Source: Ylistrum balloti (taxonomy: Eukaryota). From it: a DNA stretch of 64,000 bases. Positions 29,030 through 60,423 of the stretch are shown piece after piece. Each line of letters starts with the position of its first letter. Position 1 is the first letter of the stretch. Both the position numbers and the translations under genes were made by a program. The stretch spans positions 62,001 to 126,000 of the forward strand of contig NW_026782057.1 in the NCBI RefSeq assembly GCF_031769215.1, read 5' to 3'. The notes beneath the pieces are model-generated. The model had not been told where the DNA came from and did no database searches. It was given only the letters and a program-made list of their open reading frames with translations.

Positions 29030-29350
29030 ATGTTTATCTTTGGAATTGTTGTGTTGGCAATGCCAGCCCTGGTATTTCTTGATGTTAGCGTGTCAGATGA
29101 GGATATCATATACCTGAATTATGTAAAGTACGTGCGTGGATTTCGTTTACATAAGGGAGTATTCCGTGTGATTGATATCTCGTCTTATACATCATGTGTA
29201 AGGGAATGTCTATTTCGTGTACATTGCCATGGGATCACGTACCATCGGACTCGATTCTACTGCCACCTGGTTAACCAGTCTACTGACCTACAAGTGGTCA
29301 GTGATAATAACATAATCTCAAGCCATCCAACTGACTGGAATCCACCTAAG
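29030..29350 (+). CDS. Gene B exon 1: signal peptide + PAN/apple domain
   Basis: MFIFGIVVLAMPALVFL hydrophobic leader; SCVRECLFRVHCHGITYHRTRFYCHL (C-x3-C-x5-C-x11-C PAN core); ends WNPPK|GTAAAT. Confidence 0.88.
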
Positions 29351-32300
29351 GTAAATGTTATATAGTTGTACATAGCGTTTGGGAAAGCATAGTACCTGTT
29401 ACCTTATGTTTAGACTTCATGCCATTTGAATCTTTCAAAACCAATGGCTAACCTATTGTCATTGAAAATGAGAGACTAAAAACAGAAGAAAAAACATTTT
29501 GGTACGTTTTGTTGATGATATTTATTTCAAAACTACTCACAAAAATTAAAATAAAATGAACAAACCATTATAAGTTCATCAGGTTTTATTACATGTACAG
29601 TCACATCATCAAGAGGTTATCTAATTATGTTTTTGAGTCGGTTCAAGAGCGAGGTGGTGTGATCTGTCAACGGTTTTAACCAGAATAACTCGGGAAAATC
29701 AACGATGATTCTGTTACGTACCAGGTGTTGACTGTACTATTGTTATATTGTTGAAAATGGTACTGATGAAAACAAATACGTCTTACTGTAGTTCAACACC
29801 GATATATAATTATTACTATCGCCAAAATTTCTTTCAGAGAAATTAGAAAATTAAAGAATCTTTTGAAAATAAATGTTGCTAATAATTTAACGTCCATTTA
29901 CAGATAACGATAATAAGCGACCATGGTGATACCTGGGGTGTCATAATTATCCACATCATTGTACAACTAGTATTTAACATAGAAATATGTACAATTAACC
30001 AATTATGATATATTGTAATACATTAACATGCATTAAATCTTAATGTTGTATTCGTGATTGTATAGTTTAAACTATGCAACCTGTGATTGTGCAGAATTCT
30101 AAAGTGTTAGGCACTGTCTTACATGGCATTACTAGCTTAGATTAATAATGATTTACTTGGTAAGTTTCGTCGATAAAAGCAGAACACGCTTACTCTTCCG
30201 TATCGCCTTGTCTTATTCTCCTTGTAGTTTTTCAGGAGTCTCTTTGAAGATCTTTCTTTTGTTCTAGTTTCCCTGTAGTTTTATTGAATTTGAATTTGGA
30301 TTATGATTATGAGAAAATGTTTTATTTTATTCTTATTTTCAATGCTTTAAGATTATTTTTATGTAAAAGTAGCGTGTGATATATGTCAAATACATGTAAA
30401 GCTACTAAATATTGCTTGAAATTCTGGATTCCTTGTTAAACCATGGTTTCTTCTTTTTAGACTTAACATTTGAACGTTCAACATTACTAATATATAATAT
30501 CCACACAACGTTTTTTGAAAAGGGGTTCCATTGTATAAATTCCCTAGTAAATTTATTTATGCTATTATCAATGGATTCCTGATATTTTCGACATGTTGTT
30601 GTAACCTATCTGAATTCACTTCCGGAGGTCCATCAATAAATGTTAAACTTCCTCACTCTAAACGTATTTTGGGCCTTCAACGCCGTCAAAATCATGAACT
30701 ACAGGATCATCAGAAGTGACATTGTTTCAGTATGAAAATGAATGTATAAATGTGAATGATTGGAGAATTCAGTAAAATAACCGACAATAATTTTTTCCAG
30801 TAGAATGAAACAAACAAAAGGCATTATCAAGTAATCAATCACACTCATGTCATTCGATCCACATTGTGTAAAGTCATTTGAGGAACTATCAATATCCCTA
30901 CCATTCATAATACAAAGATCCGTAGTTTTATAAAAGTTAATCAATGTAAAACCGAATCCATTTACACCAGAATCTGGGTTAACTCTCCCTGGTGAATTCC
31001 TATCTGAATAGTCATCAAGATAATTAAAAATGGATTCAGTGTGGTTCCAGAAACGCTCAAGAAATGTACATTTGTATCATGTGCAATAAAATCGTATTTG
31101 TATGTTTGACTATTTAAGTTTCCGATAAACATATCATGTGTTCAAAGAACCAAAATATATATTTTTTTCTATTTCTTGCAAATATCACATTTGTATAGCA
31201 AATAAAATTACGAAGAACTAAAGGGGAACGTAGGATAATATGATAATAATGTCTTTAGCATAGTGAACAAGTCGGCTGTCAATAGTGAATGGTATAAAAA
31301 TATTAAAAGAATTATCAACAAATATGAAATACAATTCTTTATTAATAGTACATTTCAACCACTTTGATTACATCGTTTTTTCATTTTTTTCTAGGGAGTA
31401 CAGCACTTTTGAAGATTTCTATTGTCTATTGAATAATCATTTGGAATCCAACATTCAGATGTCAATACAATATCGCGTGTTAAAATACAATTATTCAAAT
31501 TTGGTCCAATTAACTTTTGACCAAAACCACCATTGAAATTCCAAAACAAACAAATTATAATTATGGAAATCAAGGTTATACTGTCCAGGTGTAGGATTAC
31601 CATTACAATGCTCCCTCCGACATCCCTAACTGTTGGTGGAGGCACTCATATTCCTCCTTAACCTTTCATAATCAGGGCGCTTGAAGTTGGCTGGGTTTCA
31701 AGAACGTCGCAATATGATCGTCCGTAACAGTCAGATGTACCATTACGTTTAACACTGGTCTTCCATTGCATCAGGTGATGGAACATGCATTTTGCTACAA
31801 TATACAATTTATCGCACACAAGACAAGTTGTAACAACGGTAACAAAGCGTCGACTAGTTATTGACTATCCTGATTCAATTCCAAGGTTTGGTTGAGATAT
31901 ACGTCCCTTGTCTGTACATCATCTTCTATTTTTTCTCCAGAACATCGTATAGAGTTCATTGATACCCATCTACATTGCCATTGTTTTGTTGACAGTGGTA
32001 GGATGTAGAAACATATTAGATATACAATGCTGCTCTTTGTTGACAATTTCATTTCCATTGTCTGTGATAATCTATAAGGAATAACCGTACCTTGGAAATA
32101 TCTCTTTGATGATGGGTTATACAATGCTATCAGCTGATTGATCTGACAGGCTGAATGTTTCTGGCCGTTCAGTACAGGTCAATGAACGACACTTTTTATT
32201 TATTGCCTGACAGTGTTGTTAGGTAAGGACATTGAAAGGCTAAGCCAATCTTTGCAAATGGATACAGAAGTATTTCTTGTGTTGACGCCTACAATTTCCG

Positions 32301-35300
32301 CTTCGTATTTGGGGAAAAATAATAATCTTTATAAAGTCATAACTGTTATTAAAGGGCAAGGAGATTGTGGTACTATTTGATAAGTAAAATTTCCAGTTCC
32401 TAAGGAATGTACAAACATAATCTTGAATCGCCCGAATTTTCGTTAGACCAAGTGACGTTTCTCCTCCATCTTAATAGCATTCCCACTGTTTGAATGCAAT
32501 TAATTCCTACTACATTTGTATATCTTTATCATTGCCCTGTTTCTTTTGTATATTCCTGTTATGCTCCACTCTGGTTTGCTGAGTTTATCAGGTGCATCTT
32601 TGTCGCGAGTTACGTGTTCTCCCGGATCAAACTTATTAGAATCAAGGTGCTTATTTCTATTGCGCGAGTTTCTATCTCGTGTTACTCGTCCACAAGCTCC
32701 TTAGAGGTTTCTTTGTTCTTGTCACCGTCATTGTCGGATTTTCGTGACAGCGCAGTTTCAACCCTTGCGCTACATTTTGTATCTTTTTGTTCTTCATCTG
32801 CGAATTTAGATATATTTTAGTTTGTGATCTGTCTTGAGGACAAAATTGGCATTTAGTAATCTTATTTTTGCAAAGAACACTTCCAATTCTTTGACAGGTC
32901 ATTTTGTTTGTGAATGGCTGAGCCTTAGCGGCAAATAGTGAAGCGCCATTTTTACACCATTTTATGACATCTGTATGAGGCATACTCAAATACACGTATC
33001 ATTGGCATCGGTGTACAATGTGTAAGGTTTTTTGGCATCTGGGTAAGCTAGTAGTGGTGCTACGTTCAAGCTTTCCAAACCTATTTTGGCATTCAGCGTC
33101 ATGTGAAACCTTGCAAGCTTGTTTTGTAATTTCGACTATCAGAAAGAAGTTAGAAGGATCGGTTTTCAGGGCGAGATTACACGGCTGATATACATTTCCT
33201 TTTCTTAGTTTTCTGATGGTGCAGGGCAAGATGTCACTGTTTACTTTAAACATCTTCAGCATTAATTCGTCCATTATTATTTTTTTCCAATTCTAAATAT
33301 CTTATTGTTATTTTCTCCATCATTAATACCCTGTCCATTAGTTTTTCTCTTTTTTTATGTGAACTAACTATATCAATGGTTTGTGGAAAGTTGAGAAAAC
33401 ATTAAAATGCGGCTTGAACAAACAAGTACTAACATGGCAAAATAACCTTTCCCCGTGCGAAGCTCCTCCTCAGCGAAATTCTAGTCTGGGCACAAATTGG
33501 AGCTTGTTGCTGAACAGAGGAATAAGTCAGTCCTCTTATTTGGAATTATTATTTAATCAGGTTATGTTACCTGTAAATGTACATCATCCAGGGTTGATAA
33601 CATGATTTTGTACCTAATCCAAGAACGAGGTATGTGCTCTGTCAATGGTAATGACCTAAAATACTCCAGAAAGTCCTGCGTATGGATGTATAAATGCATC
33701 TGTTACAACGCATGCACAATTGAAAACATTTACTGCTTAATGTAATTCAACATCGTCATAGTATTACAGAGTCCTTTACGTTTATTCATCAGCATAATTA
33801 AGTTAATTATAGCTAATTTGACAGTTGGTGACTATTTTACTTCAGATTTCGAACAAACCTAAAAGCAACATAAAAAAATAATGAAAATGCAAATGTTATC
33901 ATGAATTGATGTAAATCAAGCCGAGCCGAATTTCAGTGTTTTATGTATTTTTTTTTTACTTTTACAAATAATTAATGAGAATGAAAGAAATATCATATAT
34001 CATTATATATCATACATATAAATTCAAGAAAACACATTCTGGACATACATATGTTTTAATAACGTTATTAGTTTGGGCGTAATATTACGACCTATTGTAA
34101 AATTGCATTAGTTAGATATGCAAAACTGACTACCTTGAGATTGGCGCCGTTTATTAACTCTAGTCCGGAAATGGAAATTGTCAATTTTATGGGACGACTT
34201 TTCTTTGAGTGAGTTGACGATTCTGGAGACTATTTGATCATATGCAAAATTGTATATATATATATATTGTGCATTTAACTGGGTTTTTTTTTTATCAAAT
34301 TACTTTTCATTGTAACTTCACATACATTAAAAAAAATTTACAATAAATTTTCTTATTTTTAATCAAACAATCAACATTTAGAATGTGGCCGTGATGTACC
34401 AGTAGACTACTTTTCTTGTAGTGTAACTTGCAGTTGTTTTCGTTGCAATCACATACACGTTCAGTGTACATTTTACATTTTATCGACTCCTTATTGCTCA
34501 GTAACATCATGAAAGCCATTCTGCATTTTATACCATTACATTCGTAAATATTCTTAACATCAGCTTCTGTGGTATCTAAAGGTCTTATTCATGTGCTTAG
34601 ATCCATGTTAAATTTGTCAATTGAGAACGCGTTTACATGATTTTGCTAGAAGATATACATAAAAGACTATAACCTATTAAATAAGGTCCATGAATACTAT
34701 CGTATTGCTTAGTTTGTCATAAGGAATTAACTATGTACTTTAATCATAATTTTGGGTAAAATGTTCAGATACAAGAGGTTGAATTCACTCTTTACTTTTG
34801 AAAGAAGGTATCTGAGTACATGCACAGAACGAGGTCGGGTTTAATGACAGCTAGTATTCCTGACATGTATTTTAAATAATGCCCTTTACGTACATGTTTA
34901 AAAAGATCAGAGACGGCAAGTATTCATTATTCAGCACATGAACTTAGAATGAAGGTCTCTGAGTACATTTGTTCTAGTGATAAAAGGTTACTGTTCGCTC
35001 TTCGAACCCTAGCCTTAACATCGACACTGGTTCTTACATTAATGGAGGTCTACCTCTTCCATTCATTGACAAGGGAGGCTTGTTGTTTCATAATTGAATT
35101 GCCCACACATGTATCGTAAAGTAACGGTAGATATGCATTGTTCAGCATATCTATTTCCGTAAAACAACATGTATTGTTATGTAACATCTACATTTTAAGT
35201 ATATCTAATTTGTGACTTAAAAGAGTAAATAAAAATTGTATTTTATTGGTTCTTCCTTTTAGAAAATGTGACGAATTTTGATATTATGTAAATGATACAG

Positions 35301-38300
35301 AAGACGGACAAGTGAGTAGCATTTTTTTTTAAAGGAAAAATATGATTAGATACGCTAAGTACTAAATCAAACTGCATCACATGGCTGTTTTACTGTTCCT
35401 GGAGTCGTCGTAAATGTTGAGGGCCTAAATTGTGGAAGCCTAGGAGGTATCAAACCTGATCGAAACAGATGTTCAATCGTTAATAGGAGATGCACTGATC
35501 CTAAAATTTAATACAATTTTTTATTTCGATTTATTCCAGGATATTGCTAAAAACTGTTCTGAAAAACCATGTGGGTCCGGACAGAGATGTACTGAACTTT
35601 CGTCTGGCAATATTGTGTGTATTAATACAGGTAAGTGTTAGACAGTCATAGGAACCGGCATCCATTAGAATAATCAACCATGATCATTGGCCAGCTGGCA
35701 TTTATATTCAAATTTAGTTATTGTCTCCTGTTCAATTTCCATTGTCTCGAACATTGTCATTCTTACCAGCTTTAGCTGTCCAGTTGAAAGTCATTCATTC
35801 GATAATTTGCTGGTATCAACATATTATTTGGATAATAAATCAGTAAATTGAATCGTCACGCTTCAGTTGTCCTCTCCTTACAAAATTTCTGTAAATTTCA
35901 TACTTTGTCTCAATAGTATTCATTCGCAAACAATTGGTAGTCCGTGTACTGTGGCTCGGAAAAAAACTCTTTCCGTCTTTGTCTAGTTTTGTTTTTTGAG
36001 TTAACACGGTACAAAATCAATGAAAAGAATTAATATCTTAAGGAATGAAATTAAACAAGAGATTTATTTTGCAGGAAATGAACACACTCAGTATTCATTG
36101 TAGGTTTGATTTTAATACCTACTTTCATTTATTAACCACCATCTGCATATTCGATAATGAATGTGCTTACAATAAAGTTTTTATGAGAAGCAATAAAACA
36201 GCCAGACATAATGATAACGAACATCGAATACTCCTAACCAAAGATATTGCTGAAACAAGCATATTTCCCAAGGCGACAATGACACTTTCTCATAGTCTTC
36301 GTCACACGAAATCGTGTATTGTAAGTTTACCTGCCAGTTTTTTTTACACGGAAATCATGATACTAGATATTGTATTTTCAGGAATCAGGAATTATTCGAT
36401 TATATGTGGAAAGAGTGTTCTTTTTGGCTGCATTTTAGGAAAAGATCGATATAATAGTAGAAAAAAAGTCTGTCATGTTCCCGTTTTCAATTCTGGTGAA
36501 TGTTTGGGCATTGGTCAATAGAATTATTGAATATATGATCAATATATCTAAATTGAAATTGAAAAAAAATGACAAGAATGACTTGAATGTTGCTGATTTT
36601 AATGAACTTTTCGGAAAGATGTCTTTTGAAAACAAAGACAAACCAGTGAACAGAGACACACAGTAAGTCCCCTTGGATATTGTTATAGTCTGTCGGAAAC
36701 GTTTACCACAAAATTTACTGATGAATTCAATCATTCGTACAATTTCATTATTTGTCAGTATATTTTATCTTACTCTTAGAAAGAATGAGTTCTGAGTTCT
36801 CTAAAATCCACATTAAAAATTTTCGACTTGTCGAGTATACAGTAGCACAACAAAACTATTTTTATTACTGCTTTGATAATACTACGGGTCCAGGAGCCTG
36901 GAAAAACGATTGAGATGAATTAGACAATCAAGTTACAAAATTAAAAAAAATACAAAAAGTGGTTGATATATATTCTTTATTAAATATACGAATACTAACA
37001 ACGAGGTGGGGATGTCAGTGTCAGCCTTAACTGTTTAATTGTGATTTCCATTTCCACAGAATGTTCCGATCCGCCGGAAATGACGTTATCCACCACATCT
37101 AGTTTAAGGTCCGTTGGCATTACTATTAGTAACGAATACCTTTCTAACTCCTCATTCACAAACGTCACATGTGTAACGGAAAGCATCACATGTAAGGCAG
37201 ACAATACGTGGACAAGTCCGAAGTACACATTCAAACGTGAGTATGAAAAATTAATATTTCGAATTAAACATTCATGAGGATGTTTTCTTTCGATCAGATT
37301 TTGCATGGTTTAGTGTTTATTGGTAAATATTTGAAGTCGATAAGAAGTTTTTACACACTGCTGCAAGGCTATATACCTACCTCTGTAGTCAGTTTTGTCT
37401 GTCACGGAGAGAAGTGTACCTACACCTGTATGAGTATTGGGAACATTACCAGAGCAGTTCCTTGTACATACACTAGCCGATACTAGAAGACAGTACAGTG
37501 TCTAACTAAAGGTTTATGGTTGTCTTAACAACGTTCTAAAGAACGGATTGCCGTCATTTATTTCATATGATAATGCAGAGGACAGGTGTAGAGAAATATA
37601 TTGTTCTTTTCTACGTTTATGGTATTTGCTTTTCTGAATTATTGGAGGAAAAATGAATAAATATACGGTTGTTTATAGAAGTNNNNNNNNNNNNNNNNNN
37701 NNNNNNNNNNNNNNNNNNNNNNNNNNNNNNNNNNNNNNNNNNNNNNNNNNNNNNNNNNNNNNNNNNNNNNNNNNNNNNNNNNNNNNNNNNNNNNNNNNNN
37801 NNNNNNNNNNNNNNNNNNNNNNNAATGAAATAAAAACCTGCGGGGCGTTTCTTTGAATTTTTTGAAACGTTGTAAATATACCTAATAAACCATGCATAAT
37901 TTTACAATCAATGAAACTGCCGGGCGTTTGTTTTATTCTTTTTAAACATTGCAAACCTATCTCATAAAATTTGTAATTACTTTTATATTTTCTCAGCGTG
38001 TCCCTTGGAATTTCAAATTGTATCCGATGCCTATTGTATCCTGCTTGTGACAAATCAATCATTGACGGCAACCGACAGTGATGAGTACTGCCAGACAAAA
38101 GGAGGCCGACTTATCTGGATGACAAGCGTGGAAAAGTTCGATGCCGTCGAAGCCGTTATTAGTGAGTAGAATTATTTCAATACTTACCAAGCTATACATT
38201 TTGTCGTGTTTTAGATTTATAAAGCTCAATCGGAACACGTTTCATCTCAAATAGTGATGTGCAATATGAATCTGGACATGTTTGGTACTCATTACTTTGC

Positions 38301-39895
38301 ATGTTGCTTCCGTTGTTGTATACCTTGTTCACATTTTATGACGTGACTTTACTTACTTGCATTGACCAAGATTTCTATCGCGGGTGTCGCCGATGAAGCA
38401 GAAGCGTTTACTGTCCCTGAACATGTGATCTTACTTTCCTATTACTTTTTCAGGAGTCTTCGTGTTAATCTTTCTTTTGTTCCTGTTTTGTCACGATTTG
38501 ATCGAATTTGATTATGATTATGTCGACTTGTTGTTATTTTCTTGCTGTTATTGTACTTAAGACACACAGGTTAATAGGTCCTTCCAATACAAATTCAGAA
38601 TTAAATATAACAGAACCAGGTCATGAATTCAACTGTATTATACAGCTGTTCCGTCCCTCTACGAGTTGCTTAAGGCCTAAATTTTGAAACCAAGGAGGCG
38701 ACTAAGAAAACCAAAATCGACCGATAGAAATAACTCTATGAATTAACTGTTGTGTTTAAAATGAAGTTTCATTTCACTTCGATAGGTAATCCAACAGTCT
38801 AGCCCAAAAATATTTTATTTGAGAAAAGACATGTTTATAGTTAAAATTGTATTTTCGATGGATCAAATTTTGGAATTCACCAAATTCTGCACTTTTTACA
38901 CGGAATCCATCAAACAGAATATAGTTTCCTGCCCTTTTAATTTCATTTCCAAACTTCATTCTTTCTTTTTCTTGATTTCACTGTGTTTTCCAATATACAG
39001 ATAACTAGAAACATTTACAAAATGTTTAATTACCTGATCCGTCTAAGTTCTCTTAATGAAGGCCCCGATGGCTTGCACCATGTAAATGGTAGGGGACATC
39101 CAAGGCGTGTAATTATCAGAATAAGGGAATGAAGGGAACTTTAGGTAATGAAGGGACCTTCAGGTAATTAAGGGAACTTTAGGTAATGATCCGTGGTGTG
39201 TGATCATAGGAATAAAGAATTTTTCGATGAGTATGAGCATCGCAATAACGGAACTTCAGGTGAAGATCCTAGATGTGCGACCGTTGGAATAATGGACCTT
39301 TAGGTTAAGATCCAATGTGTGCGAGCATTAGAATTAGGGACGTTCAGGTAATGAAGTTAACTTAAGATAATGATCCGAGGTGTGTGAGCATCGCAATTAC
39401 GGAATTACAAATGAAGATCCGAAGCGTGTGGTTTTATCTCTGTTTGAGCGATATGTGTTCTTTTGGAAGTTGAGACAGTTAATCATCATTTAATATCGTG
39501 ATTGTATACTTTTTTTTTAAATATGCTGTTGAGCTCCAGCACTTTTTACTGTTCCAAAGAGCTCAAAGACGGTACCGATATTTTGCTGTGGATTTGTCAT
39601 AATGCTATACAAAGAATTTCTGACATAATATGTTGTTTTGTTCAAAATGAATATATTTTACAACATTATATATGTTATCATTGCAGCATCCGGGAGATAC
39701 TTTTTGGCAGGAACAGACGTAGATGTTGAAGGCATATGGAGATTACCTAATGGTGAAGAGATGACGTGGATAGGAAGTCGAGGGACAGAGTTAAAAACCG
39801 ATGTTGAGGATTGTCTAACCTATGACAGTAGTAGAGGGAAATTGAGGGATATTTATTGCGACAAAACAAAAAACTTCATATGCGAAGTTGTATAG
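29030..39895 (+). CDS. Gene B: secreted PAN - EGF/FOLN-like - Sushi/CCP - C-type lectin domain protein, join(29030..29350,35540..35630,37060..37236,37997..38161,39687..39895), 320 aa
   Basis: Five exons with canonical GT/AG sites splice by hand into one open 963-nt frame ending in TAG at 39893-39895. AATAAA lies at 39925-39930. Exon 2-5 lengths (91/177/165/209) and phases (0,1,1,1) are identical in paralog C. Domain calls come from Cys spacing and motif recognition, not from a database search. Confidence 0.88.
31835..33253 (-). mobile_element. Mirror copy of the decayed Gypsy pol remnant in gene B intron 1
   Basis: Reverse complement of ~6264-7790. Confidence 0.8.
35540..35630 (+). CDS. Gene B exon 2: 4-Cys EGF/FOLN-like module
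   Basis: ttccAG|DIAKNCSEKPCGSGQRCTELSSGNIVCINT|GTAAGT; C-x4-C-x5-C-x9-C. Confidence 0.88.
36385..36760 (-). mobile_element. Third Penelope-like RT fragment (gene B intron 2)
   Basis: Degenerate match to the F.GR.FQQT.GI.MGT.C and FNF.RYID region (reads FCGKRFRQTITISKGTYCV and RYIDH), followed by MTD..DLFL. Confidence 0.55.
37060..37236 (+). CDS. Gene B exon 3: degenerate Sushi/CCP domain
   Basis: cacAG|ECSDPPEM...VGITISNEY...ITCKADNTWTSPKYTFK|GTGAGT; 177 nt, phase 1-1. Confidence 0.85.
37683..37823. other. Assembly gap (N run) in gene B intron 3
   Basis: 141 N. Confidence 0.99.
37997..38161 (+). CDS. Gene B exon 4: C-type lectin domain, N-terminal half
   Basis: ctcAG|PCPLEFQIVSDAYCILLVTNQSLTATDSDEYCQTKGGRLIWMTSVEKFDAVEAVI|GTGAGT. 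Not in the supplied ORF track. Confidence 0.88.
39100..39430. repeat. Degenerate ~44-bp tandem repeat (gene B intron 4)
   Basis: Recurrent GCATCGCAAT..GGAACTTCAGGTGAAGATCC.AGATGTG units plus shorter ~19-bp AGGGAACTTTAGGTAATGA units. Confidence 0.7.
39687..39895 (+). CDS. Gene B exon 5: C-type lectin domain, C-terminal half
   Basis: tgcAG|TSGRYFLAGTDVDVEGIWRLPNGEEMTW...EDCLTYDSSRGKLRDIYCDKTKNFICEVV*. Confidence 0.9.
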
Positions 39896-41365
39896 AACTT
39901 ATACGACAGGTCAGGAATATGATTAATAAAATCAAATGTTAAAATTACGTGAAATATTCTGTAGCATATACATTTGTTTCAGTTCAATTAAACTTCAACA
40001 AGTGCCGTTGATTGAATTGAAAGTAGAGTCATCATGGAATGTATGATGTAAACACCACGGGATCAATTTGATCACGTGCTTTTGGATGCAATTATTACTT
40101 AATGTTGGAAAATGTTGAATGCGCTTTACTTGAAATACAGTACATTATTTGTAACATGATACAGATCATAAAGTCTTTAACGAATTAATTTGTAATGAAT
40201 TTGAGAATACATAAACTAAAAATTACGTGTCTTGATTCTAAACGAAACAATTAAGTATACATGAAATAAAAGGCTGTCTACAGTTACCTAGTTTTGTGTT
40301 CCGTTATCAAAATAATAGAAAAACTAGTTTGAACTAATACATTTTAAGTTTTCTCTCATATCTCGCTGTTAGATATAACATGCTCTTGTTGTATATAGGA
40401 TGAATATAAGATATGTGTTTGAACCATCCTCGATATTCCTGGCATAACGCTCACTATTGATCCATACACAGAGCGATAGTGAACTCAGAGTATCAGCCAT
40501 TTGTGACAAACTGCTAAATTTGCAGGATATTCTATTGAGAAAATGGTATTAGCGTATGTTTTATAGTTTTTGCTGTTATTTTTTGGCTGTTTTTGTCAAT
40601 GATCATAGCTAGATCAGATAATGTTAAATACCATCAGTATTTTTCATCCTTGAGTGTCGTCTTTTTTATTCAAAATCGTTACTAAAATCACTCATACCTT
40701 TTGAAATTCCAACAATTGTATTATACCTCTGTCACTGATGTTAAGGGACAGAAGGCAAATGAGAAAAATAGAAAAAAATCACCGGAATGATTGTGAAAAT
40801 CTATGTAGCTTGGGAGGTGCATTGGCCCAATAATTCCATAGACTTTGTAATTGTTTTATTATAATTTCATCAGATCATAGAGTACATGTGTATATTCTGA
40901 ACTATTCGAATGAAGTAACACGTGGCATGCAGGTAACGACAAACCTCGGGGACCATTAGTCCACAAGCAGTGTCTACTACCACTAAATTCGAAGATAGCA
41001 GTCGAATGTCACGTAAAGACAATCAAGTTTTTAGGAAAGGGCTGCACAAAAAAAATGATACCGAAACATACATTAAAATATTGTAATATGTAGCAATTAA
41101 AAGAAAATGTAAGCTAAAATTTCACATCACATTTTTTTAAAAATGTTATGTAATGATGGGGCAACTTTTCGCGGTTGTTTACAAAACATATTACTTGTTC
41201 CCTCACACCAAAAATTGGTAAGGTTACACATTTTCTTCGGGAAGAATGTTTATTCTGCTATGCACGAGTAGTGTAATTTTCAGTTTGTACAGAGTCGGTC
41301 ATGTACAGTGAGATATAATCACCAAACTACACTATATGTACGAGGAGGAGACTGACCTCGCAATT

Positions 41366-41496
41366 NNNNNNNNNNNNNNNNNNNNNNNNNNNNNNNNNNN
41401 NNNNNNNNNNNNNNNNNNNNNNNNNNNNNNNNNNNNNNNNNNNNNNNNNNNNNNNNNNNNNNNNNNNNNNNNNNNNNNNNNNNNNNNNNNNNNNNN
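41366..41496. other. Assembly gap (N run) next to a pentanucleotide repeat
   Basis: 131 N followed by (GCGGT)n / GTGCA-like repeats. Confidence 0.99.
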
Positions 41497-42273
41497 GCGG
41501 CGCGGTGCGGTGCGGTGTATGTAGTACAGTGTAGTGCTGTGCAGTGTAGTGCAGTACAGTTCAGTATCCGGCTTATCTCCAAACCACACACCTCGTATCT
41601 TACCCGAGGTTATATAGGCAGACGACCCAACGTCTGAGCTATCGTCCCCAGTATCTACTCAAGAATTGATATTTTCTTTCTAAAAGTGTTTACAATTTTT
41701 CTTGTTTTAACTTAATCGTTTATATAGATTAACCTATATTATGATGGTTGTGATGACTCTCATCATTTCCTTTTTCCTCGAGTTCAATAAAACTTTTTCA
41801 TGTTTGTGTTGTCTATGGCATTTATGGTTTAGGATTGTAACTTAGAATCAAATTTAAATATCATTCTGTAAATTTTTTTTATCATTTTTATCACAATTCT
41901 TTTTGTGTCATCCAGTGGACTCACACTGATGCTTCATGCATCAATGATATATGTTTGTGTATTGTTTACGATGTTTAAAGTTAATAAACATTTCAGCTGT
42001 AACAAATGTTTCATTTATTGTTTTCAACATTCAAATCTTCCCTTCAATACAATTTGTTGGGTTTAAAAGACTGTAAAACAGACACGCAAGTTTCTATACA
42101 ATATCATAATATGTAGTTAATGATTAGAGTCATTTTGGTTCATGTGTCACATTAAAGAATTTATAAAAACATATGCCAAGAATTATAAGTAACACTCGAT
42201 ACAAAGGCTGTACATACATAGATGATATTCAATGCTTGTTATTCATATTAAACTAATTAATGTTAAACTGAAT

Positions 42274-42430
42274 CGTTTAGATGCTGGTTCTCCTAACTTT
42301 CCCCAGGTATTTGTGTCTATGGATGAAACATGGTCCATCAGTTTAACCCCGGAGACCAAACAACAGTCAAAATAATGCAAGCACCCCTGCGAAGCCTCGC
42401 CAAAGACGGCATATAATGGTTCATCTGTTG
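42274..42430 (+). mobile_element. Tc1/mariner (mariner-type) transposase fragment
   Basis: RLDAGSPNFPQVFVSMDETW...PETKQQSK*CKHP, matching the mariner TGDETW / PETKQQSKQW region with the first catalytic Asp. Confidence 0.75.
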
Positions 42431-45400
42431 AAATTGCTGATTGTATTCCGGTTGTTGCGTGCTGGGTTAACCCAATCAAGTTATCGAGCGGTATAAAGGA
42501 AAGCAGTTTTTATGTGTCGCCACATAAAATTAGCTATACAGCTTGCATATACGTACATAAAACAAATGGCTGACGGTGGACTTTATCCGATTCGCGATAT
42601 CTAATAGTAATGATAATAAAAGACTTTAAACAGTGTCGATGGCACTTTGAGTTCACACAAGTGGCCGACATCAGAACTATACAATATTTATAATCATTAA
42701 TATTGAAACATTACAGACAAATCTTAATATTACAGTAAGATGTAAGAGAACATTTAAATAAAATTAGCTAAAAGATGCATTATGAATGTATATAAAACAT
42801 GTGACACACACAGTAGGGATTAAGAGTTACATAAAATACAATAATGAAATACAGTTACGATGATAATATATGCTAAAACTGCCAGACAGTGGAATTTTAT
42901 ATTTAGAAGTTGAATGTATATTTTTGTGCATTCAAATTTAAAACTATTCAGGTTTTGGCAGTACTTAATACTGTCTGGTCAACCATTCAAAAGTTTGTGT
43001 TTAGTAAAAAAAAAAAAAAAAAAAACTCTTCACCTGGTACAGAATAATCTCCATCTAGTATTATGCGTAAAACTCTCTTTTGCAATCTTTCTAACTTTTT
43101 AATGTATGTTAGAGAACAGTGTCACCAAATATTTGAACAATGATAACAGTAGCCCGTAAGATTGTTAAATTCTCCAATTTTATTTAAGAAAACCGACTGA
43201 TTGCGAAAACACTTGTCAACAAGCACGATTGAGTGAATGAGTGTGAACGCTCGTGTATCGGAGTGTGAAAGTGTGTGCGTGTGCAGGTGTAAGAGTTAGT
43301 TCATGTAAAAACGGCTATCTATCACTTAAACATCATAATATTCCACGTGTAAACTAAATTCATTAGCCGTAAGGCTTTCCTAATAAAAAAATTGAATAAC
43401 AGAGTCAGTGAAAAATGGGAGTCAGACGATTCATTATCTAAAGCCTATATATGATGTACCGTAATAGATATTTTACAACCATCCTTGATCATCGACCTGC
43501 CGGTCCGATTGTTTTAAACATTTACTTATTTATCTGTTAATATTCTGTTTTGCTTACCAATGTTATTTTTGTCGGTCAATTTAACTTCTGTAATTACGAG
43601 CTCATCGTCCTCTTACTGCCATTAACTGCCTAGACCACACGCATGATTGGCGGAGCGTTACTGATTCCCTAAAAGTATTCATCATCGTTTTTAATGGCAG
43701 TCAAACACACACACACGATATTTTAAGTACTATAATTACTTCTTACAATTAAGGCTACAGTGTCACCTTCTCTACTACATCTAATTAAACTTGCACTTCC
43801 CGGTGATATCAGGACTTGTGTACCTGGCTCTTGGTACAGGATACGGTATCAAACTTTGTATAAGCACTGTACCGAATGTATTCGCGAGAACAGAGTCTTT
43901 GTGGCATGGTCAGTTTTGCTTTAAAATGGAATATTGTTATCTATTTGTTGAGTTTATCGACCCGTGAAAATCCTTGTTACTACAGAGGTTACGAGCATTT
44001 TTCGTTCACTGCACCCCTGGAACATTTCATGGAAAAAATTAAGGTTCCATATACGGCACATTGTGGACAAGTCTAGTCTGATTATTTGATGTACATCAGG
44101 CAAATCTCGAGGTCGCATAACGGTATGTTGTATCGACTTTGAAGACGGATATCGTTCTTTTGTATTCTGCGATTGGTCATATTTTTTCTTGAGACCCACT
44201 CAAGACTAATCAAATTGATTCGCGTGTGCCCTCCAGTTTGCAATGAAATGTTCCATGGGTACAGAGATCGCAAACGATCGTAACCCTTGGATTTTCAAAG
44301 AAATCTCAAGAACAGCTAGGATAATTTTGAGGCAGGGCCTCCTTGTAGTAACAAATGACTATCTCAGAAACAACAAATGAGAGACCCATATGCCATCCAT
44401 AAGAATAAAATATCCTGCTCAAGGACAGGCCACGACAGCACAAGCCGCCCGTTTTCAGTTTCCCGAGAAACACAAAACCGCCACGTTAGGGAGCGTCTGA
44501 CTTTCTCCTGAGGTTAGGTAGGTATACCAATAGGTGGTAATTAGTATTTGCATCTTTTAAAACACATAACGACATCCATTCAATATCACCTAGAAAGAAA
44601 AATGACAATTGCCATGTGATTAATACACCTGGCTGGAAACCGACATACGGATGTTTTCATCCGGAACGAAATTCTTAATTGACTTGTAATGTTGCGGCAC
44701 GTTGGTCATCACTTAAAATCACCGAAACGTGAGAGTCTAAGTAATCAATGTATTGTAATGTGTTCATACCACTTGATCAGTTTACTAGCAAGGCATATAT
44801 GCATTGGTACTCCACTGGAATACACTAACTTCACGATCAGCACGCTATAGAGCCAGCGTCAGGAAAAGAGTCCGACATGGATGTTGTGTGTTAATGTATT
44901 AGAATTCTGGTGTTATTTTAACTAACATGGCGCTGACTTTGTGAAGCTGGAACTATCCATCGGACATTGTAATCACCCAGATACAGGTATAGTGATTTTC
45001 CTCGATTGCTTTTTAACTGTGTACATTCACGAACTTTAATTATTTCATTACATGTCAATGTAACACTCGCAAAATCCTATGAATATGCTCCTTATTATAA
45101 TTAAAATGGATGATTTTATAACGTTCATCATTTGATATGCATAGCTTTTGCTGAAAATTGATATATTGGTGCAGAATTTTCGCCAAGAAATATACTTGTA
45201 CATGTAACACATAGCGTGCCTTGTGCTCATATTGACATAACAGATGCAACAGAAAAACGTATATTGAGAACGATCTCGATTGACAGAAAATGATACAGCA
45301 TTGTTTGATGAAGCCACCATTACGATGCTAATCAATTACTGAATAATCAATTCAGAATCCTACAATCGATATTTGTTAAAAATGACAGTGTCTTATTCCT

Positions 45401-45437
45401 GTGATAGGCATTTCGAAGATATTCATCTATTATCTAA

Positions 45438-48400: not shown

Positions 48401-48780
48401 CATTGGTGTTAAATGAACGTCTCCTGTGGTTAACAGTGTTGTTTGATGAACGTCTCATGTGGTTAACAGTGTTGTTAAATGAACGTCTCCTGTGGTTAAC
48501 AGTGATGTTAAATGAACGTCTCATGTAGTTAACAATGTTGTTAAATGAACGTCTCCTGTGGCTAACAGTGTTGTTAAATGAACGTCTCCTGTGATTAACA
48601 GTGTTGTTAAATGAACGTCTCATGTGGTTAACAGTGTTGTTAAATGAACGTCTCCTGTGATTAACAGTGTTGTTAAATGAATGTCTCCTGCGGTTAACAG
48701 TGTTGTTAGATAAACGTCTCCTGTGGTGTACAGTGTTGTTTGATAAACGTCTCCTATGATTAACAGAGGTATTTGGTGAA
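45438..48780. repeat. 33-bp minisatellite/satellite array, ~100 copies (GAACGTCTCCTGTGGTTAACAGTGTTGTTAAAT), with 32-bp variant monomers
   Basis: Directly visible; head-to-tail monomers with no unique spacers. Confidence 0.97.
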
Positions 48781-50480: not shown

Positions 50481-50849
50481 TTATTATTGCGTATTTTAAA
50501 AGATACGGCTTCTTTGGTCGAGATAATGTTTGTAAATCCTCCAAATTTTGTAAATTCTCTCAATGTTTTCGTTGCTTCATGGAAATTAGAACTGACATTT
50601 TAAACTGATATTAATTCTAATCGCCTGTTTGTAGTTATGTATTAATATATTCATGCCTTTCTTGATGTTACACTGTATATAAAAAAAATTGTGTTTTTAA
50701 AGTGGGGTTATTTTGTATTTTAGGAGTAACATCAAACAGTCACATCTTGGGATTCCAGGCCAGGACGTGTGTTTTGGTGGAAATTACACCTTTGGAATGT
50801 GCTTGTTGTTCTTGTGGATGAACTATATTCGCTATCTAAATCTACTGCT

Positions 50850-50856
50850 TATAAAA
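50850..50856 (+). promoter_or_regulatory. Candidate TATA box for gene C
   Basis: TATAAAA about 100 bp upstream of ATG 50955; the transcription start is unknown. Confidence 0.3.
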
Positions 50857-50954
50857 TCTGTTTACATGTATCGAGGCTTATAGTGAGTACTTCCTGTATA
50901 AACAACACGATGAACATGTAAAGATTAAAAAAAAAACACATTAGTGTATTCGAA

Positions 50955-51314
50955 ATGGATGAGAATAACTCAACTTTATTACGTCATCTCGTGATTATGT
51001 ACATACGGGTAATTATCTTCTTGATTGTACTTAACCTTGTTCTAAGTGTAAATATAACGAAAGATGACATCATAAATCTGAATACTGTAAAATACGTACA
51101 GGGATTTCGTCTGCGGACTGGAGTATTCCGTGTTTATGAAAACACGTCCTATACATCATGTGTGAGAGAATGTCTGCGGCGTCGACAGTGCGTGGCGATC
51201 TCGTATCATCTTGTCAATTTTTACTGCCACCTCGGGAGCCAGACATCAGACATAGAAAATGTCGGTGATAATAAAATTATCTCTAGTCATCCGACAGACT
51301 GGAATCCACCAAAG
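50955..51314 (+). CDS. Gene C exon 1: signal peptide/anchor + PAN domain
   Basis: MYIRVIIFLIVLNLVLS hydrophobic stretch; SCVRECLRRRQCVAISYHLVNFYCHL; WNPPK|GTAAAT. Confidence 0.88.
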
Positions 51315-54300: not shown

Positions 54301-57300
54301 AGGGGAAAACATGTGTATATGTCACTTTATTTGATATTAGCATTTTATTGGAAACGATTTTTTTTCTTTTCTATTTTGTAAATTATTTTCATACAAGTTA
54401 TATAGCGCTTTATTTGATGGCTTCTTACTTAAGATGGAGAAATTATTTCCGACAATAAAATAAAGGAAAAAAGTTACCCTTAGATTTTTTTTCTTTTATC
54501 ACAACATTTTTTTCTTGTTTGTGTTTTAGAGCATCGTGGGAAATTGTTCAGAAATGCCTTGTGCTATCGGACAGCGATGTACTGAATTGTCCTCTGGCAA
54601 AGTCGTATGCGTTAATACAGGTATTTACGATACATAATGTTAATGTGGGTAAACTATGAATAGTACAACTTAAACATTCGACAACATAATAAGAGTATAT
54701 AGTATACGAGTTCTATGGCATATTGAGGTTATTGAACTAGTTCAACCTGGTGATTTTTTTTATCGTAATCTCTCCGTCCCGGCCCTTGGTAGAGACGAGG
54801 ATTCTTTGACTGGATTTGTGTTTCACCAGACCTGAATATGTTTATCCTTGGGGTAAAAAGAGGGGATTCCACTTTCAATCTAAGACGAAATTGAATTTCT
54901 TATTTAATGTCACATCAGGGACGTTATAATACAGATAATATGTATTATACGTCTCTGGTCACATTTAAGTTTTGTGTTTACAGAATGTCCAGATCCGCCG
55001 GAAATGACGTCATCAACCACGTCAAGTTTAAGAACAGTCGGTATTACAATTAGTTACGAATACGTTGCAGACGCATCAAATCCAGCCATCGTATCCGGAA
55101 ATCCAAATATCACGTGCAAGACTGATAACACGTGGACATATTCGGACTACACTGTCAAACGTTAGTACAGTTTTTATTACAATGCTACAAATCGAATTTA
55201 ACAATGCTAACTTGCGACAAATGTTGTACATCGGTGTTGGCTAATGAATTATTAGTGAGTGTAAGTGTTATCTAATTAAATGAATTTATGCATGCAATGA
55301 ATCAATCATAGTTGACTAACTAGTTGTTTGGGCTCCTCGTCTGTAAATCCTTTCTTCTATCTTTTTTTCGAATCGTGCGTGAGAGTTTGAAATAAAAATG
55401 ATATATGTGTTTAATTTGTAACTTAAAACTATAATGTGGTCTCTTCCATCCATATTTCTATACATTTAGTTTGTGGTGTACTGATTATACATGCAAGCCC
55501 TACTGATTCCTACAGGCAGCAACTGAATATATTTTCCAATAAAATCAATAAAGCACGCGCGATTTAGAGCAAAACGCAATAATACAGCCTACACATAATG
55601 CCACGAGAAAACACAGCTCTACGAATAGATTCGAAAACAAAAACATACACGAGAAGGTCATTGTAGGATTTCTCGGTACACAAAGTTTTCAGTAAAGATG
55701 AGAAATTTGTGTTAATAATAATATTTACGCAGCAAATGAAACATTTAGATGACAGGTTTGTATTACAAATGGCGGCGGTATATATATGCCAGTTTCCCCT
55801 GAAATCTACACAGTTTGGCAATATATCCGTAGGGGAAATGGCATTTACACATATTCTTCCATAACCATGTTTACAAGCGCATGTGTCTCCGTCCTTTCGC
55901 ATCTCAAGGTATACAGCCTTCCTGATACAAAACATGAGTGACGTCATGTGGGAAACGCGATAAAAAAATATAAATTTCCTACCGTGCTGATATAGGAACC
56001 AGGTAGCCATGAGAAATCCATGCTTTTTCCCGGTATGGGATTTCCTTGTCTCATCCTAGGCTACAGAAAGCTATACGTGTTCTTTGCAAGTTCTGAAAAC
56101 GATTTAAGGATGTACTCTTTTGAGAAGAAAAAAAAGAAGCCCAGTATTAAACTTTTCTTCCAATTTTTTTTTGATGAAGCTAGATCTTAGAAAGAAGATT
56201 GAAAGCAAAAAATCAATATGTTGCTGCACTACTTTTTCCAGTACAGCCGCCAGAATATGCATAACAGGAAATAATTCATTTTCACATAAAGTTTTTATGT
56301 TTTCTGAATAACAGACATTACCTGTTATTTTCGCGGCAGCCGTCTTTAAATAAATTTTTGTCTTTTATTTTTAAGATCACGGTAAAATAATGGTATAAGC
56401 AAATGAAAATTTCGACATAAAGAAAAATACATTGAAAAATGCTTAGTTTTCATTTGCTTTAACGAGCTTTAACGATCTACTTTAGACTTCCAGAGTAATA
56501 CTCAAGAGAAGTTCTTAAGAAACCAGAAAACGTTGAAATGTTTTACGCTGTTAACCGAATCACGCCGGCAAGTACGCCGTCAAAAAAAAGTAGTCAACAA
56601 GCGAAATTTCTTCATAACGTCATAAAAAATCGCCTTTTTAAGTTTATAAACACAGCTTTAGATAACAAAGTGTATAAGACTACCAAAGCCCAAGATATTA
56701 TGTTGGAATTCATTTCATATTGAGTTATGGTTTACTTCCGGTCAAAACATCGAAAGAGGAACTACTTTTATGAGGTCACACACATACATTAGTTTGTCTA
56801 CTACTGACATCATGCGTTATCCTCAAAACTGAAAATCCTCATCAAGATTGAAACTCAATTTAATCTTTTCAAATATATAGATTAAATAACAAAATTATAA
56901 TTTTATTTGAAGTTGTATTGGCATGTGCATTAGAACTATATTTTGTGTAAGATTAAATCACAATGCATTAAGCGTGTGACACCATGCATATGTTTTTGTT
57001 TACACCCAATACACTTTGTATTGCACTCGGACCACCAAAAAAGGGTAAGAGAAAAGAGAAAAAAAATAATTCCCTTTAGGGTAAGATAGAGTCGCACAGG
57101 CACCATCGTCACTCATGTCTACTCTGGTGCGATTCGAATTCTACACCGTTTCACTACTACTGGCAATATCCTTCCGCCTAATGTTTGGGGGAAAATTCTG
57201 ACGTGAAAATGTTTGTACTAAATATTGTTTTATAAACACAATTCACAATTTTAATGGAAATAGATATTAAAAAAGAGATTCCGATTATATCCTAAGTGTT

Positions 57301-60300: not shown

Positions 60301-60423
60301 CACAGCCGCGCAGAAACTATCGACACCGACAATGAAGATTGTCTAACCTACGACCACAGCTATAAGAAACTGAGAGATTTTGTCTGTACCGGCGCCAAAT
60401 TATTCATATGTGAAATTGCATAG
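50955..60423 (+). CDS. Gene C: paralog of gene B, join(50955..51314,54530..54620,54984..55160,58379..58543,60215..60423), 333 aa (319 aa if started at ATG 50997)
   Basis: All splice sites are GT/AG and the spliced frame is open (1002 nt). The PAN exon is 56/85 aa identical to gene B by hand alignment. TATAAAA at 50850-50856; AATAAA at 60669-60674. Confidence 0.88.
52229..52670. repeat. 39-bp minisatellite, 11 copies plus a decayed one (gene C intron 1)
   Basis: GGATACAACGAAAGGATAGGGAAGGACAGGATTTAGTGA recurs every 39 nt (52229, 52268 ... 52619). Confidence 0.95.
53235..53470 (-). pseudogene. Frameshifted THAP-type zinc-finger N-terminus, probably DNA-transposon derived, in gene C intron 1
   Basis: ATG at 53470: MVKRCCRGTCNTD, then a 1-nt frameshift, then RYAERLERGVVFIPFPKSQTKHEKCKSWLRLCGRP...KHF. 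Shows C-x4-C, FP, W and KHF hallmarks. Confidence 0.65.
54530..54620 (+). CDS. Gene C exon 2: 4-Cys EGF/FOLN-like module
   Basis: tttAG|SIVGNCSEMPCAIGQRCTELSSGKVVCVNT|GTATTT; 91 nt. Confidence 0.88.
54984..55160 (+). CDS. Gene C exon 3: degenerate Sushi/CCP domain
   Basis: tacAG|ECPDPPEM...VGITISYEY...ITCKTDNTWTYSDYTVK|GTTAGT; 177 nt. Confidence 0.85.
58379..58543 (+). CDS. Gene C exon 4: C-type lectin domain, N-terminal half
   Basis: cccAG|LCPSDFQVVAGTYCVLIVTDQRLAPAKGDEYCQTKGGRLIWMTSVDKFDAVVAVI|GTGTGT; 165 nt. Confidence 0.88.
58851..59853. repeat. 26-bp minisatellite, ~38 copies (gene C intron 4)
   Basis: Unit AGTACGGTATAAAACA(C/G)GTTAGACCT. Confidence 0.97.
60215..60423 (+). CDS. Gene C exon 5: C-type lectin domain, C-terminal half
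   Basis: tgcAG|DTGRYFLAGSDADVEGTWKLPDGEPMTW...EDCLTYDHSYKKLRDFVCTGAKLFICEIA*; 209 nt. Confidence 0.9.

Follow-up and report, generated by a model that had tools for sequence, protein, structure and literature searches.

We analysed a window of 64,000 nucleotides from the genome of the saucer scallop Ylistrum balloti (NCBI RefSeq assembly GCF_031769215.1, contig NW_026782057.1, positions 62,001 to 126,000 of the forward strand) and found three neighbouring paralogous genes, here termed A, B and C, that each code for a protein of about 320 amino acids. In RefSeq these genes are LOC132547498 (A, protein XP_060067239.1), LOC132547501 (B) and LOC132547502 (C), each labelled "uncharacterized protein", and our recomputed models equal the RefSeq proteins (P0001 for A, P0047 for B and P0049, which starts at the second ATG, for C). 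B (29030-39895, plus strand) is intact with five exons and 320 amino acids. C (50955-60423, plus strand) is likewise intact with five exons and codes for 333 amino acids, or for 319 when translated from a second ATG at 50997. A is a third intact copy of 320 amino acids on the minus strand that extends past the left edge of the window. The exons, together with the two assembly gaps near B, are as follows.

29030..29350, plus strand: B exon 1, PAN/apple module preceded by start codon and signal peptide; ends in phase 0 at a GT donor; PAN_1 30.8 bits
35540..35630, plus strand: B exon 2, 4-Cys EGF/FOLN-like mini-module; phase 0 to 1, AG/GT sites
37060..37236, plus strand: B exon 3, degenerate Sushi/CCP-like module; phase 1-1; Sushi 13.3 bits
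37997..38161, plus strand: B exon 4, N-terminal half of a long-form CTLD; phase 1-1; full-length Lectin_C 42.1 bits
39687..39895, plus strand: B exon 5, C-terminal half of the CTLD and stop; Lectin_C 24.7 bits for the exon alone
50955..51314, plus strand: C exon 1, signal peptide and PAN; PAN_1 22.0 bits; RefSeq start 50997
54530..54620, plus strand: C exon 2, 4-Cys EGF/FOLN-like mini-module
54984..55160, plus strand: C exon 3, degenerate Sushi-like module with two Cys only; Sushi 20.0 bits
58379..58543, plus strand: C exon 4, N-terminal half of the CTLD; full-length Lectin_C 40.3 bits
60215..60423, plus strand: C exon 5, C-terminal half of the CTLD and stop; Lectin_C 29.5 bits
10056..10376, minus strand: A exon 1, PAN preceded by the signal peptide; 98% identity with exon 1 of B
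53..143, minus strand: A exon 2, 4-Cys module
L013 8243-8067, 7217-7053 and 5517-5309, minus strand: A exons 3-5, left of the window
37683..37823: assembly gap in B intron 3, non-coding, 446 nt past the donor of exon 3, with 173 nt left to the acceptor of exon 4
41366..41496: assembly gap downstream of B, 1.47 kb past its stop codon

An initial sequence-only reading had proposed three paralogs, with B and C splicing into intact frames that share the lengths and phases of exons 2-5. All three copies are indeed intact and have RefSeq counterparts, and recomputation gave exons 2-5 of 91/177/165/209 nt with phases 0/1/1/1 in both B and C, where all splice sites are GT-AG. The identity that had been given for the PAN part of exon 1 (its last 85 amino acids), 56/85 between B and C, was reproduced exactly. 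The junctions are based on homology, splice-site consensus and the automatic RefSeq models. Neither N gap touches coding sequence, the phases match at the exon 3/4 join of B, and all eight family proteins align over this join without insertion. Additionally, the DNA around A runs collinear with that around B to either side of each gap, in support of the assembled order and orientation. The same reading regarded the exon-per-module layout as unusual, a view that we do not retain. Mosaic extracellular proteins that arose by exon shuffling classically have one exon per module with phase 1-1 borders, and such borders flank the CCP exon here. The description is also inexact, as exons 4 and 5 each encode one half of the CTLD and exon 1 encodes the signal peptide along with the PAN module.

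A and B lie in the two arms of an inverted duplication that are separated by a unique spacer of 1.9 kb (19329-21221).

1..19328, minus strand: left arm of the inverted duplication, carries A, continues at least 10 kb past the left edge of the window
21222..44379, plus strand: right arm of the inverted duplication, carries B

Divergence was measured on the alignment of 1-19328 against 21222-44379. The exons of A and B differ by 1.45% while flanks and introns differ by ~2.5-3.7%, and the coding sequences have a dS of 0.014, with 11 nonsynonymous versus 3 synonymous changes and a dN/dS of ~1. The two proteins differ at 10 residues, 7 of which are in the CTLD and all of which are nonsynonymous, and this 7:0 excess in the CTLD is not significant (P ~0.18). 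B and C have a dS of 1.2 and a dN/dS of 0.22. An older tandem duplication for B/C and a young inverted one for A/B had been suggested previously, and both suggestions agree with these values (~3% overall divergence for the latter). A and B are products of a recent, inverted segmental duplication that spans 23 kb or more, and the split between C and the A/B ancestor is old, with evolution under purifying selection. Trees did not settle whether B and C split before or after the scallop species did.

Heterozygosity is high in bivalve genomes and haplotigs are readily retained in their assemblies, and a preprint deals with hemizygosity in molluscs. Against this background the long collinear arms could also mean that copy A is an assembly artefact in which a divergent haplotype of B was joined in inverted orientation. 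We consider this improbable, as a single 1.03-Mb contig holds both arms around the unique spacer and the arms differ not only by the substitutions given above but also by many large indels. Furthermore, the A arm alone has a fragment of a retrotransposon integrase at 12136-13231 and a tandem duplication of 1.5 kb at 3176-6211, and RefSeq annotates both A and B, whose proteins differ at the 10 residues noted. The dN/dS of ~1 between A and B would in turn suit decaying pseudogenes or mis-predicted chains of open reading frames that have no function. This explanation is largely refuted already and we find it hardly credible given three intact frames with consensus splice sites, the low dN/dS of B versus C and an A-B exon divergence that is about half of the intron divergence. 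Moreover, structural cysteines are kept across four genera, with 16/16 present in seven core members of the family and 15 in an Argopecten paralog that has a replaced Sushi region. A and B each contain an additional 17th cysteine that is unpaired.

Domain assignments were made with Pfam searches that were run exon by exon on the window models and full-length on the RefSeq records P0001, P0047 and P0049. With a curated cut-off of 21.4 bits for PAN_1 (PF00024), exon 1 of B and of C score above threshold, as do full-length A (27.8 bits) and full-length B (27.6 bits), while full-length C from the second ATG reaches only 18.8 bits. The core cysteines of this module, C-x3-C-x5-C-x11-C (C56, C60, C66 and C78), are invariant in 15/15 aligned relatives and the outer apple-type Cys pair is absent. 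The PAN module that had been assigned from sequence is thus borne out by the exon 1 scores of B and C and by the invariant core. The following module of ~30 amino acids has the pattern C-x4-C-x5-C-x10-C, with spacing that is invariant in 15 sequences, and it has no match in Pfam at E values up to 1. Its spacing may resemble that of the N-terminal 4-Cys hairpin of FOLN, which we treat as a lead; an EGF module has six Cys. An AlphaFold model built from a 15-sequence input (pLDDT 66; an 8-sequence input gave 32 and was discarded) is good for the PAN module and the CTLD and poor for residues 141-180; it predicts a beta-hairpin at residues 122-136 of the 4-Cys module with a pLDDT of only 54-63. A family profile searched against PDB sequences returned only weak CTLD and marginal PAN matches.

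The third module had been called a Sushi domain, which is correct as to descent and incorrect as to a canonical domain. Exon 3 falls below the curated Sushi cut-off of 20.7 bits (PF00084) in both B and C, and full-length Pfam searches give any Sushi match in just 3/8 family members (best E 0.0021). Sushi C1, C3 and the Trp are kept in 7/8 members and C2 is replaced in 8/8. In addition, a single Cys is left in the scallop family where intronless paralogs, described below, have Sushi C4 plus the CTLD C0. CCP descent is indicated by an exon 3 profile that matches the CCP modules of complement receptor 2 (CR2) with an E of 3.7e-4 and by a column-for-column alignment with the canonical Sushi of the intronless paralogs (27.7-42 bits). 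The length of exon 3 (177 nt) and its phase 1-1 borders agree with this descent. On the basis of these alignments, exon 3 encodes a CCP-derived module with one disulfide in place of the C1-C3 and C2-C4 pair of a canonical Sushi. This segment was modelled by AlphaFold at a pLDDT <50, so it could be a flexible linker instead of a folded module; one Argopecten paralog has T/E-rich repeats in its place.

Assignment of the C-terminal module to the CTLD fold, also made in the sequence-only reading, is well founded. Full-length Lectin_C scores (PF00059, cut-off 22.6 bits) are 39.5-42.1 bits, the CTLD is modelled at a pLDDT of 75-90, and Foldseek aligns the model with Mincle, MGL and CD23 at TM values of 0.72-0.79. 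VIA returned KLRG1 with a Z of 15.9 (rmsd 1.9 over 112 residues) and the bivalve lectin codakine with a Z of 15.4. A different picture emerges for the claim that this end of the protein recognizes glycans. In an alignment with DC-SIGN, the EPN/QPD position is TEL in A and B and ETI in C (EVI, KII, ERI or NKI in orthologs), and the WND position is LRD, or LID in one paralog. The CTLD of the family thus has neither of the canonical Ca2+/sugar-binding motifs, EPN/QPD or WND, and the proposal of glycan binding by the CTLD end is weakened because these residues are absent. Consequently, automatic "C-type lectin" labels would mislead for a CTLD that has no classical sugar site.

All family members have one N-terminal hydrophobic peak and no further membrane segment, and they therefore look secreted, as was originally proposed. 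The proteins are acidic (D+E > K+R) and 7/8 members contain 4-7 N-x-S/T sequons. Many vertebrate CTLD receptors keep their N-terminal signal as an uncleaved anchor next to a short cytoplasmic tail, and at least the C-type members could be type II membrane-anchored receptors of this kind. C has an upstream in-frame ATG that adds 14 amino acids, an extension that could make the signal act as an anchor in the membrane; the M. yessoensis RefSeq protein (P0053) has an extension of equal length, Argopecten P0052 has a similar start, and the best structural matches of the CTLD are type II receptors (KLRG1, CLEC5A, NKp80). Nevertheless, we give this possibility little credence, as A and B have no upstream ATG and instead have an in-frame stop 14 codons upstream, RefSeq places the C start at the second ATG, and the 14-aa tail holds no recognisable signalling motif.

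Close relatives of the three genes were found only in four scallop genera; outside Y. balloti there are, besides the M. yessoensis protein, LOC117333821 and LOC117334130 of Pecten maximus and two Argopecten genes. The whole PAN exon was matched by only two clusters among 1.84 billion cluster representatives, with members from these genera, and the Y. balloti genome contains just three close copies. Word-indexed profile searches with A4 and an oyster protein as queries returned no further members. More distantly, no fewer than four paralogs that lack introns are present elsewhere in the Y. balloti genome, and they share the four modules but have a canonical Sushi.

L009 1450-2694: intronless paralog open reading frame, Sushi 42 bits
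L014 1672-2598, minus strand: intronless paralog open reading frame, Sushi 30.6 bits, EPD motif kept
L015 1281-2231, minus strand: intronless paralog open reading frame, Sushi 29.0 bits
L005 700-1809, minus strand: intronless paralog open reading frame, same four modules

These paralogs are like A, B and C in module order, signal peptide and 4-Cys spacing and are of similar length (309-415 aa), and hhalign of the scallop family against the L009 frame is collinear over all four modules (99.7%, E 3e-26). They differ in having a single-exon coding sequence, a four-Cys Sushi that scores above the cut-off, S/T-rich linkers in some cases, and very long tree branches that separate them from the A/B/C family. 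Outside scallops, the uncharacterised oyster genes LOC134237886 and LOC134237885 of Saccostrea cucullata contain a collinear PAN - 4-Cys hairpin - Sushi - CTLD unit (hhalign 97%, E ~1e-10), which differs from the scallop proteins in being repeated or extended (473 and 434 aa) and in having a four-Cys Sushi, with an identity of only ~23-29%. Mollusc PAN + Lectin_C clusters and PAN/Sushi clusters in the ESM Atlas provide leads for related architectures. For example, Argopecten irradians P0039, named 'C-type lectin domain family 17 member A-like', has an N-terminal PAN, a 4-Cys hairpin and a C-terminal CTLD (hhalign 98.5%). Unlike the scallop family, these PAN + Lectin_C proteins have no Sushi and are shorter (~226-265 aa), and P0039 keeps a longer sugar-site loop.

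A literature search on the locus names and on PAN + CTLD + Sushi combinations found no description. The earlier view that this four-module set does not correspond to a named, characterised protein therefore stands, but the set is not unique to the cluster, as it recurs in the intronless paralogs and in the oyster. As far as sequence comparison can tell, A, B and C form the branch with introns in a PAN-EGF-like-CCP-CTLD superfamily of bivalves, a branch found only in scallops. They amount to one uncharacterised lineage within a larger family of bivalve lectin-like proteins and not to a singular design.

The anatomy and evolution of A, B and C as described above are very probably correct. As an overall explanation we favour, with moderate confidence, a secreted four-module scallop family that acts in recognition or as an adaptor; a recognition or immune role taken by itself is more doubtful. 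The mature protein would be a chain of four disulfide-bonded modules (PAN, 4-Cys hairpin, CCP-derived module and long-form CTLD) that, once secreted, may act as a soluble recognition or adaptor molecule. Its CTLD may bind a ligand via a non-canonical and probably Ca2+-independent surface, as in CTLDs of the NK-receptor type, while the conserved PAN and hairpin unit could be a second binding or self-association site and the degenerate CCP may mainly be a spacer.

The occurrence of EGF-like, CCP and CTLD modules together is also typical of matrix proteins, such as in the lectican G3 region. The family might accordingly comprise structural or adhesive extracellular-matrix proteins (of mantle or shell matrix, mucus or byssus type) with modules that cross-link matrix partners, instead of immune recognition molecules. 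A CTLD that has no sugar-site residues, the acidic composition and structural neighbours that include the eggshell/biomineral CTLDs struthiocalcin and ovocleidin-17 (Z 12.8-14.4) are all consistent with such a role. However, these Z-scores are no better than those of receptor CTLDs, the core family has no repeats, low-complexity mineral-binding tracts or oligomerisation domain, and its few members are conserved, not abundant and repetitive. We thus regard a matrix function as unlikely.

A more speculative extension of the adaptor reading, to which we assign a low probability, is that PAN - 4-Cys hairpin - CCP constitutes a reusable stalk cassette that carries alternative heads in humoral recognition proteins of bivalves. 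The scallop trio would then be a soluble adaptor that couples non-canonical CTLD binding to a protease/complement-like cascade, and the A/B pair may be diversifying its CTLD surface because 7/10 residue differences fall there. The head of the scallop family would be a CTLD, and fibrinogen-related domains may occupy this position in other mollusc clusters (an Atlas lead). If the stalk-cassette proposal were true, the scallop trio would be a lineage-specific adaptor like oyster CgCLec-CCP.

The lectin-like repertoires of bivalves are very large, diverse and mostly uncharacterised (PMC10140915). To these the locus adds a cleanly defined small scallop-only family with verified gene models, and it documents a CCP module that is losing a disulfide. 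Additionally, the same four-module protein is made from one-exon-per-module and from intronless genes in one genome, which suits a study of retroposition versus exon shuffling. Current views of bivalve immunity are unchanged, so the locus is of value for annotation and as a candidate to be studied functionally.

For completeness, we compare the scallop family with characterised systems that use the same modules. Selectins and the lectican G3 region (groups IV and I of the vertebrate CTLD proteins) are CTLD/EGF/CCP mosaics in which each module has its own exon and the boundaries are in phase 1. Their module orders are CTLD-EGF-CCPn-TM in selectins and EGF-CTLD-CCP in lecticans, versus PAN-EGF-like-CCP-CTLD in the scallop family. 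Neither contains a PAN module, the selectins sit in the membrane and have a working Ca2+/sugar site, and no orthology is implied. Membership of the selectin family was considered and rejected, as PAN is first and CTLD last in the scallop proteins and there is no C-terminal hydrophobic segment. CgCLec-CCP of Crassostrea gigas is a soluble protein with one CCP and one CTLD that is reported to bind bacteria and, through its CRD, PAMPs, to have the sugar-site motifs CPD/WPD in this CRD, and to associate through its CCP with a MASP-like protease, with cleavage of C3 (PMC8605247). It differs from the scallop family in having no PAN and no 4-Cys module and in retaining an intact CCP. CgCLec-CCP, likened here by description and not by sequence homology, provides the working analogy for a CCP-CTLD adaptor.

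When the two regions on the plus strand were compared in six frames, in search of conserved coding blocks, five collinear blocks common to genes B and C emerged. Splice sites were placed from the frames and checked by script, giving the following models together with that of the third paralog, gene A.

Gene A, minus strand: exon 1 10376-10056, exon 2 143-53; exons 3-5 left of the window on the same contig (L013); frame intact
Gene B, plus strand: exons 29030-29350, 35540-35630, 37060-37236, 37997-38161, 39687-39895; frames and splice sites script-checked
Gene C, plus strand: exons 50955-51314, 54530-54620, 54984-55160, 58379-58543, 60215-60423; frames and splice sites script-checked
Assembly gap, 37683-37823: inside intron 3 of gene B
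Assembly gap, 41366-41496: 1.47 kb beyond the stop codon of gene B

Every internal exon boundary in B and C is AG/GT, exons 2-5 share their lengths (91, 177, 165 and 209 nt) and start phases (0, 1, 1 and 1), and the frames are open over 320 aa in B and 333 aa in C. The intactness and identical exon organization of B and C reported by the sequence-only reading were confirmed on recomputation by script, and a recount of residues shared by their PAN parts returned exactly the same figure, 56/85. The third paralog it had claimed is also present and intact, with exons 3-5 recovered outside the window and a 320-aa product that is 96.9% identical to B. Both assembly gaps are clear of all exons. Across the first, B exons 3 and 4 join with matching phase, and none of the family proteins shows an insertion there when aligned. 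Order and orientation are supported by the collinearity of the duplication arms carrying A and B on either side of each gap. The predicted A protein matches RefSeq entry XP_060067239.1 (LOC132547498) letter for letter, B is identical to the product of LOC132547501, and C is identical to that of LOC132547502 from the second ATG. The genes are thus already publicly annotated, each as an "uncharacterized protein", and a separate pipeline independently arrived at this exon structure.

Window models were scanned against Pfam exon by exon, and database proteins at full length. PAN_1 exceeds its cut-off in A and B (27.6-30.8 bits) and in exon 1 of C (22.0 bits), and Lectin_C does so clearly (39.5-42.1 bits), such that both the PAN and the CTLD assignments stand. 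The CTLD fold is likewise borne out by AlphaFold modeling based on 15 relatives (mean pLDDT 66, CTLD 75-90), with a Foldseek TM of up to 0.79 and a VIA Z of 15.9 (rmsd 1.9 over 112 residues). The 30-aa module of exon 2 has no Pfam match; its four cysteines are spaced C-x4-C-x5-C-x10-C in 15 of 15 aligned relatives, and it is modeled with modest confidence as a beta-hairpin.

The Sushi call for exon 3 holds as to ancestry but not as to an intact domain. The exon scores 13.3 and 20.0 bits against a Pfam cut-off of 20.7, with the match covering only the C-terminal half of the Sushi model, yet its profile still matches complement receptor 2 in its CCP repeats (E 3.7e-4). Alignment with canonical-Sushi paralogs indicates that C2, the cysteine of the Y-x-C motif, is substituted in every family member and that one cysteine is left where the paralogs have Sushi C4 plus the first CTLD cysteine, while C1, C3 and the Trp are retained in seven of eight members. 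These cysteine losses explain the low score, and on this alignment the module is best described as CCP-derived but degenerate. Cysteine counts are consistent with this description, there being 16 in members resembling gene C (4 + 4 + 2 + 6) and one extra, unpaired, in A and B. The 17th cysteine, at about residue 174 in a V-T-C motif (B exon 3, window ~37165-37175), sits seven residues before Sushi C3 and is absent in C and all orthologs. This odd number points to a feature particular to the A/B lineage, either a free thiol or a disulfide between molecules. Residues 141-180 are modeled with pLDDT below 50. In P0052, a 355-aa Argopecten irradians protein that retains PAN, hairpin and CTLD, short T/E/N-rich repeats take the place of the Sushi-like module, which suggests that the protein can do without a folded third module.

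Alignment of the CTLD to DC-SIGN places TEL (A and B), ETI (C) and further non-canonical triplets (orthologs) at the EPN position and LRD at the WND position. As the canonical residues are replaced at both, Ca2+-dependent mannose- or galactose-type binding is unlikely. The top structural neighbors include protein-binding NK-receptor-type CTLDs, but Z values within 1 of one another count as ties.

Between B and C, dS is 1.2 (saturated) and dN 0.27, and the dN/dS of 0.22 is alike across modules, which indicates that the duplication is old, as had been proposed, and under purifying selection. A and B are arranged head to head within an inverted duplication whose arms are separated by a unique 1.9-kb spacer.

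1-19328, extending at least 10 kb further left: arm with gene A
21222-44379: arm with gene B
12136-13231, plus strand: retrotransposon fragment (integrase zinc-binding and rve core; rve 52 bits), A arm only
3176-6211: 1.5-kb direct tandem duplication (96% identity) in A intron 1; single copy in the B arm

It could be supposed that A is a divergent B haplotype mis-joined in assembly. Against this, A and B differ by substitution at 1.45% of exonic, 3.7% of intronic and 2.5% of downstream positions, large indels further distinguish the arms, and both the integrase fragment and the 1.5-kb duplication are confined to the A arm. Together these features argue for a real, young duplication, in keeping with the earlier proposal. 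The retrotransposon fragment is inserted between blocks matching B at 27195 and 26572. Coding changes between A and B comprise 11 nonsynonymous and 3 synonymous, with the CTLD holding 7 and 0, respectively, an excess that is not significant. Minisatellites are also present: a 33-bp unit between B and C (45450-48766; ~100 copies, 87% matches) yields long spurious ORFs on both strands, and C introns 1 (52229-52685, 39 bp x 11.7) and 4 (58851-59855, 26 bp x 38.7) contain arrays absent from gene B.

When the three PAN exons were combined into a profile and searched against 1.84 billion cluster representatives, two full-length matches were returned, the remainder being only distant multi-PAN proteins. 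Close relatives (43-64% full-length identity) occur in Mizuhopecten yessoensis (one), Pecten maximus (two), A. irradians (two) and Ylistrum balloti (three), and profile searches found none outside these four scallop species. Close copies in the Y. balloti genome are limited to A, B and C. Other loci of this genome carry single-exon ORFs with the identical four-module order and Sushi above threshold.

L009 1450-2694 (G000:C226:1023226-1024470), plus strand: intronless ORF; hhalign 99.7%, E 3e-26 over full length
L014 1672-2598 (contig C458), minus strand: intronless ORF, four modules
L015 1281-2231 (contig C209), minus strand: intronless ORF, four modules
L005 700-1809 (minus strand) and neighbors, C235:434000-502000: tandem array of intronless ORFs

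In a tree, the eight close scallop proteins are monophyletic (99/98), with a long stem separating them from the intronless paralogs. The latter may have arisen by retroposition from an ancestor with introns and later been amplified; alternatively, the intron-bearing trio may be an odd branch. Two adjoining Saccostrea cucullata proteins (P0015 and P0054) contain the PAN-hairpin-Sushi-CTLD unit (hhalign 97%), two shorter scallop proteins (P0039 and P0020) have PAN, hairpin and CTLD without Sushi, and ESM Atlas leads include mollusc PAN plus Lectin_C clusters with hundreds of members as well as PAN/Sushi clusters. The four-module architecture is consequently wider in range than the close scallop family. 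The S. cucullata models, on one contig, overlap (28% of the query, at 95% identity) and combined read as repeated four-module units; annotation may have divided a single larger gene of tandem repeats. Exon shuffling, as in selectins, complement regulators and lecticans, classically leaves one exon for each module and boundaries in phase 1, so this exon pattern, initially regarded as unusual, is not. Of greater note, intronless genes in this same genome also encode this protein design.

Each protein has a single hydrophobic segment, at the N terminus. The proteins are acidic; seven of eight family members carry 4-7 N-glycosylation sequons, among them an invariant one at the hairpin start, and conservation across the superfamily alignment is highest in PAN plus hairpin. 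We envisage a secreted, disulfide-rich, two-ended product in which the CTLD would bind ligand via a non-canonical site, the PAN-hairpin unit would provide a second binding or self-association surface and the CCP remnant would serve as a spacer. A matrix or adhesive role is also possible, as is membrane anchoring of the members resembling gene C via their 14-aa N-terminal extension.

According to reviews of CTLD proteins in bivalves, domain combinations specific to particular lineages are many, Sushi included (PMC10140915; PMC12842671). Our literature search found no paper naming the PAN-hairpin-Sushi-CTLD combination or the three loci, in agreement with the sequence-only reading, which did not recognize the combination as a named, characterized protein. 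The trio is therefore an uncharacterized addition to the already known mosaic CTLD proteins of bivalves. To our knowledge, CgCLec-CCP is the sole characterized bivalve protein that pairs CCP with CTLD. This protein both binds microbes and brings in a MASP-like protease (PMC8605247), and its likeness to the scallop trio, which lies in the CCP-CTLD pairing, would be one of analogy only.
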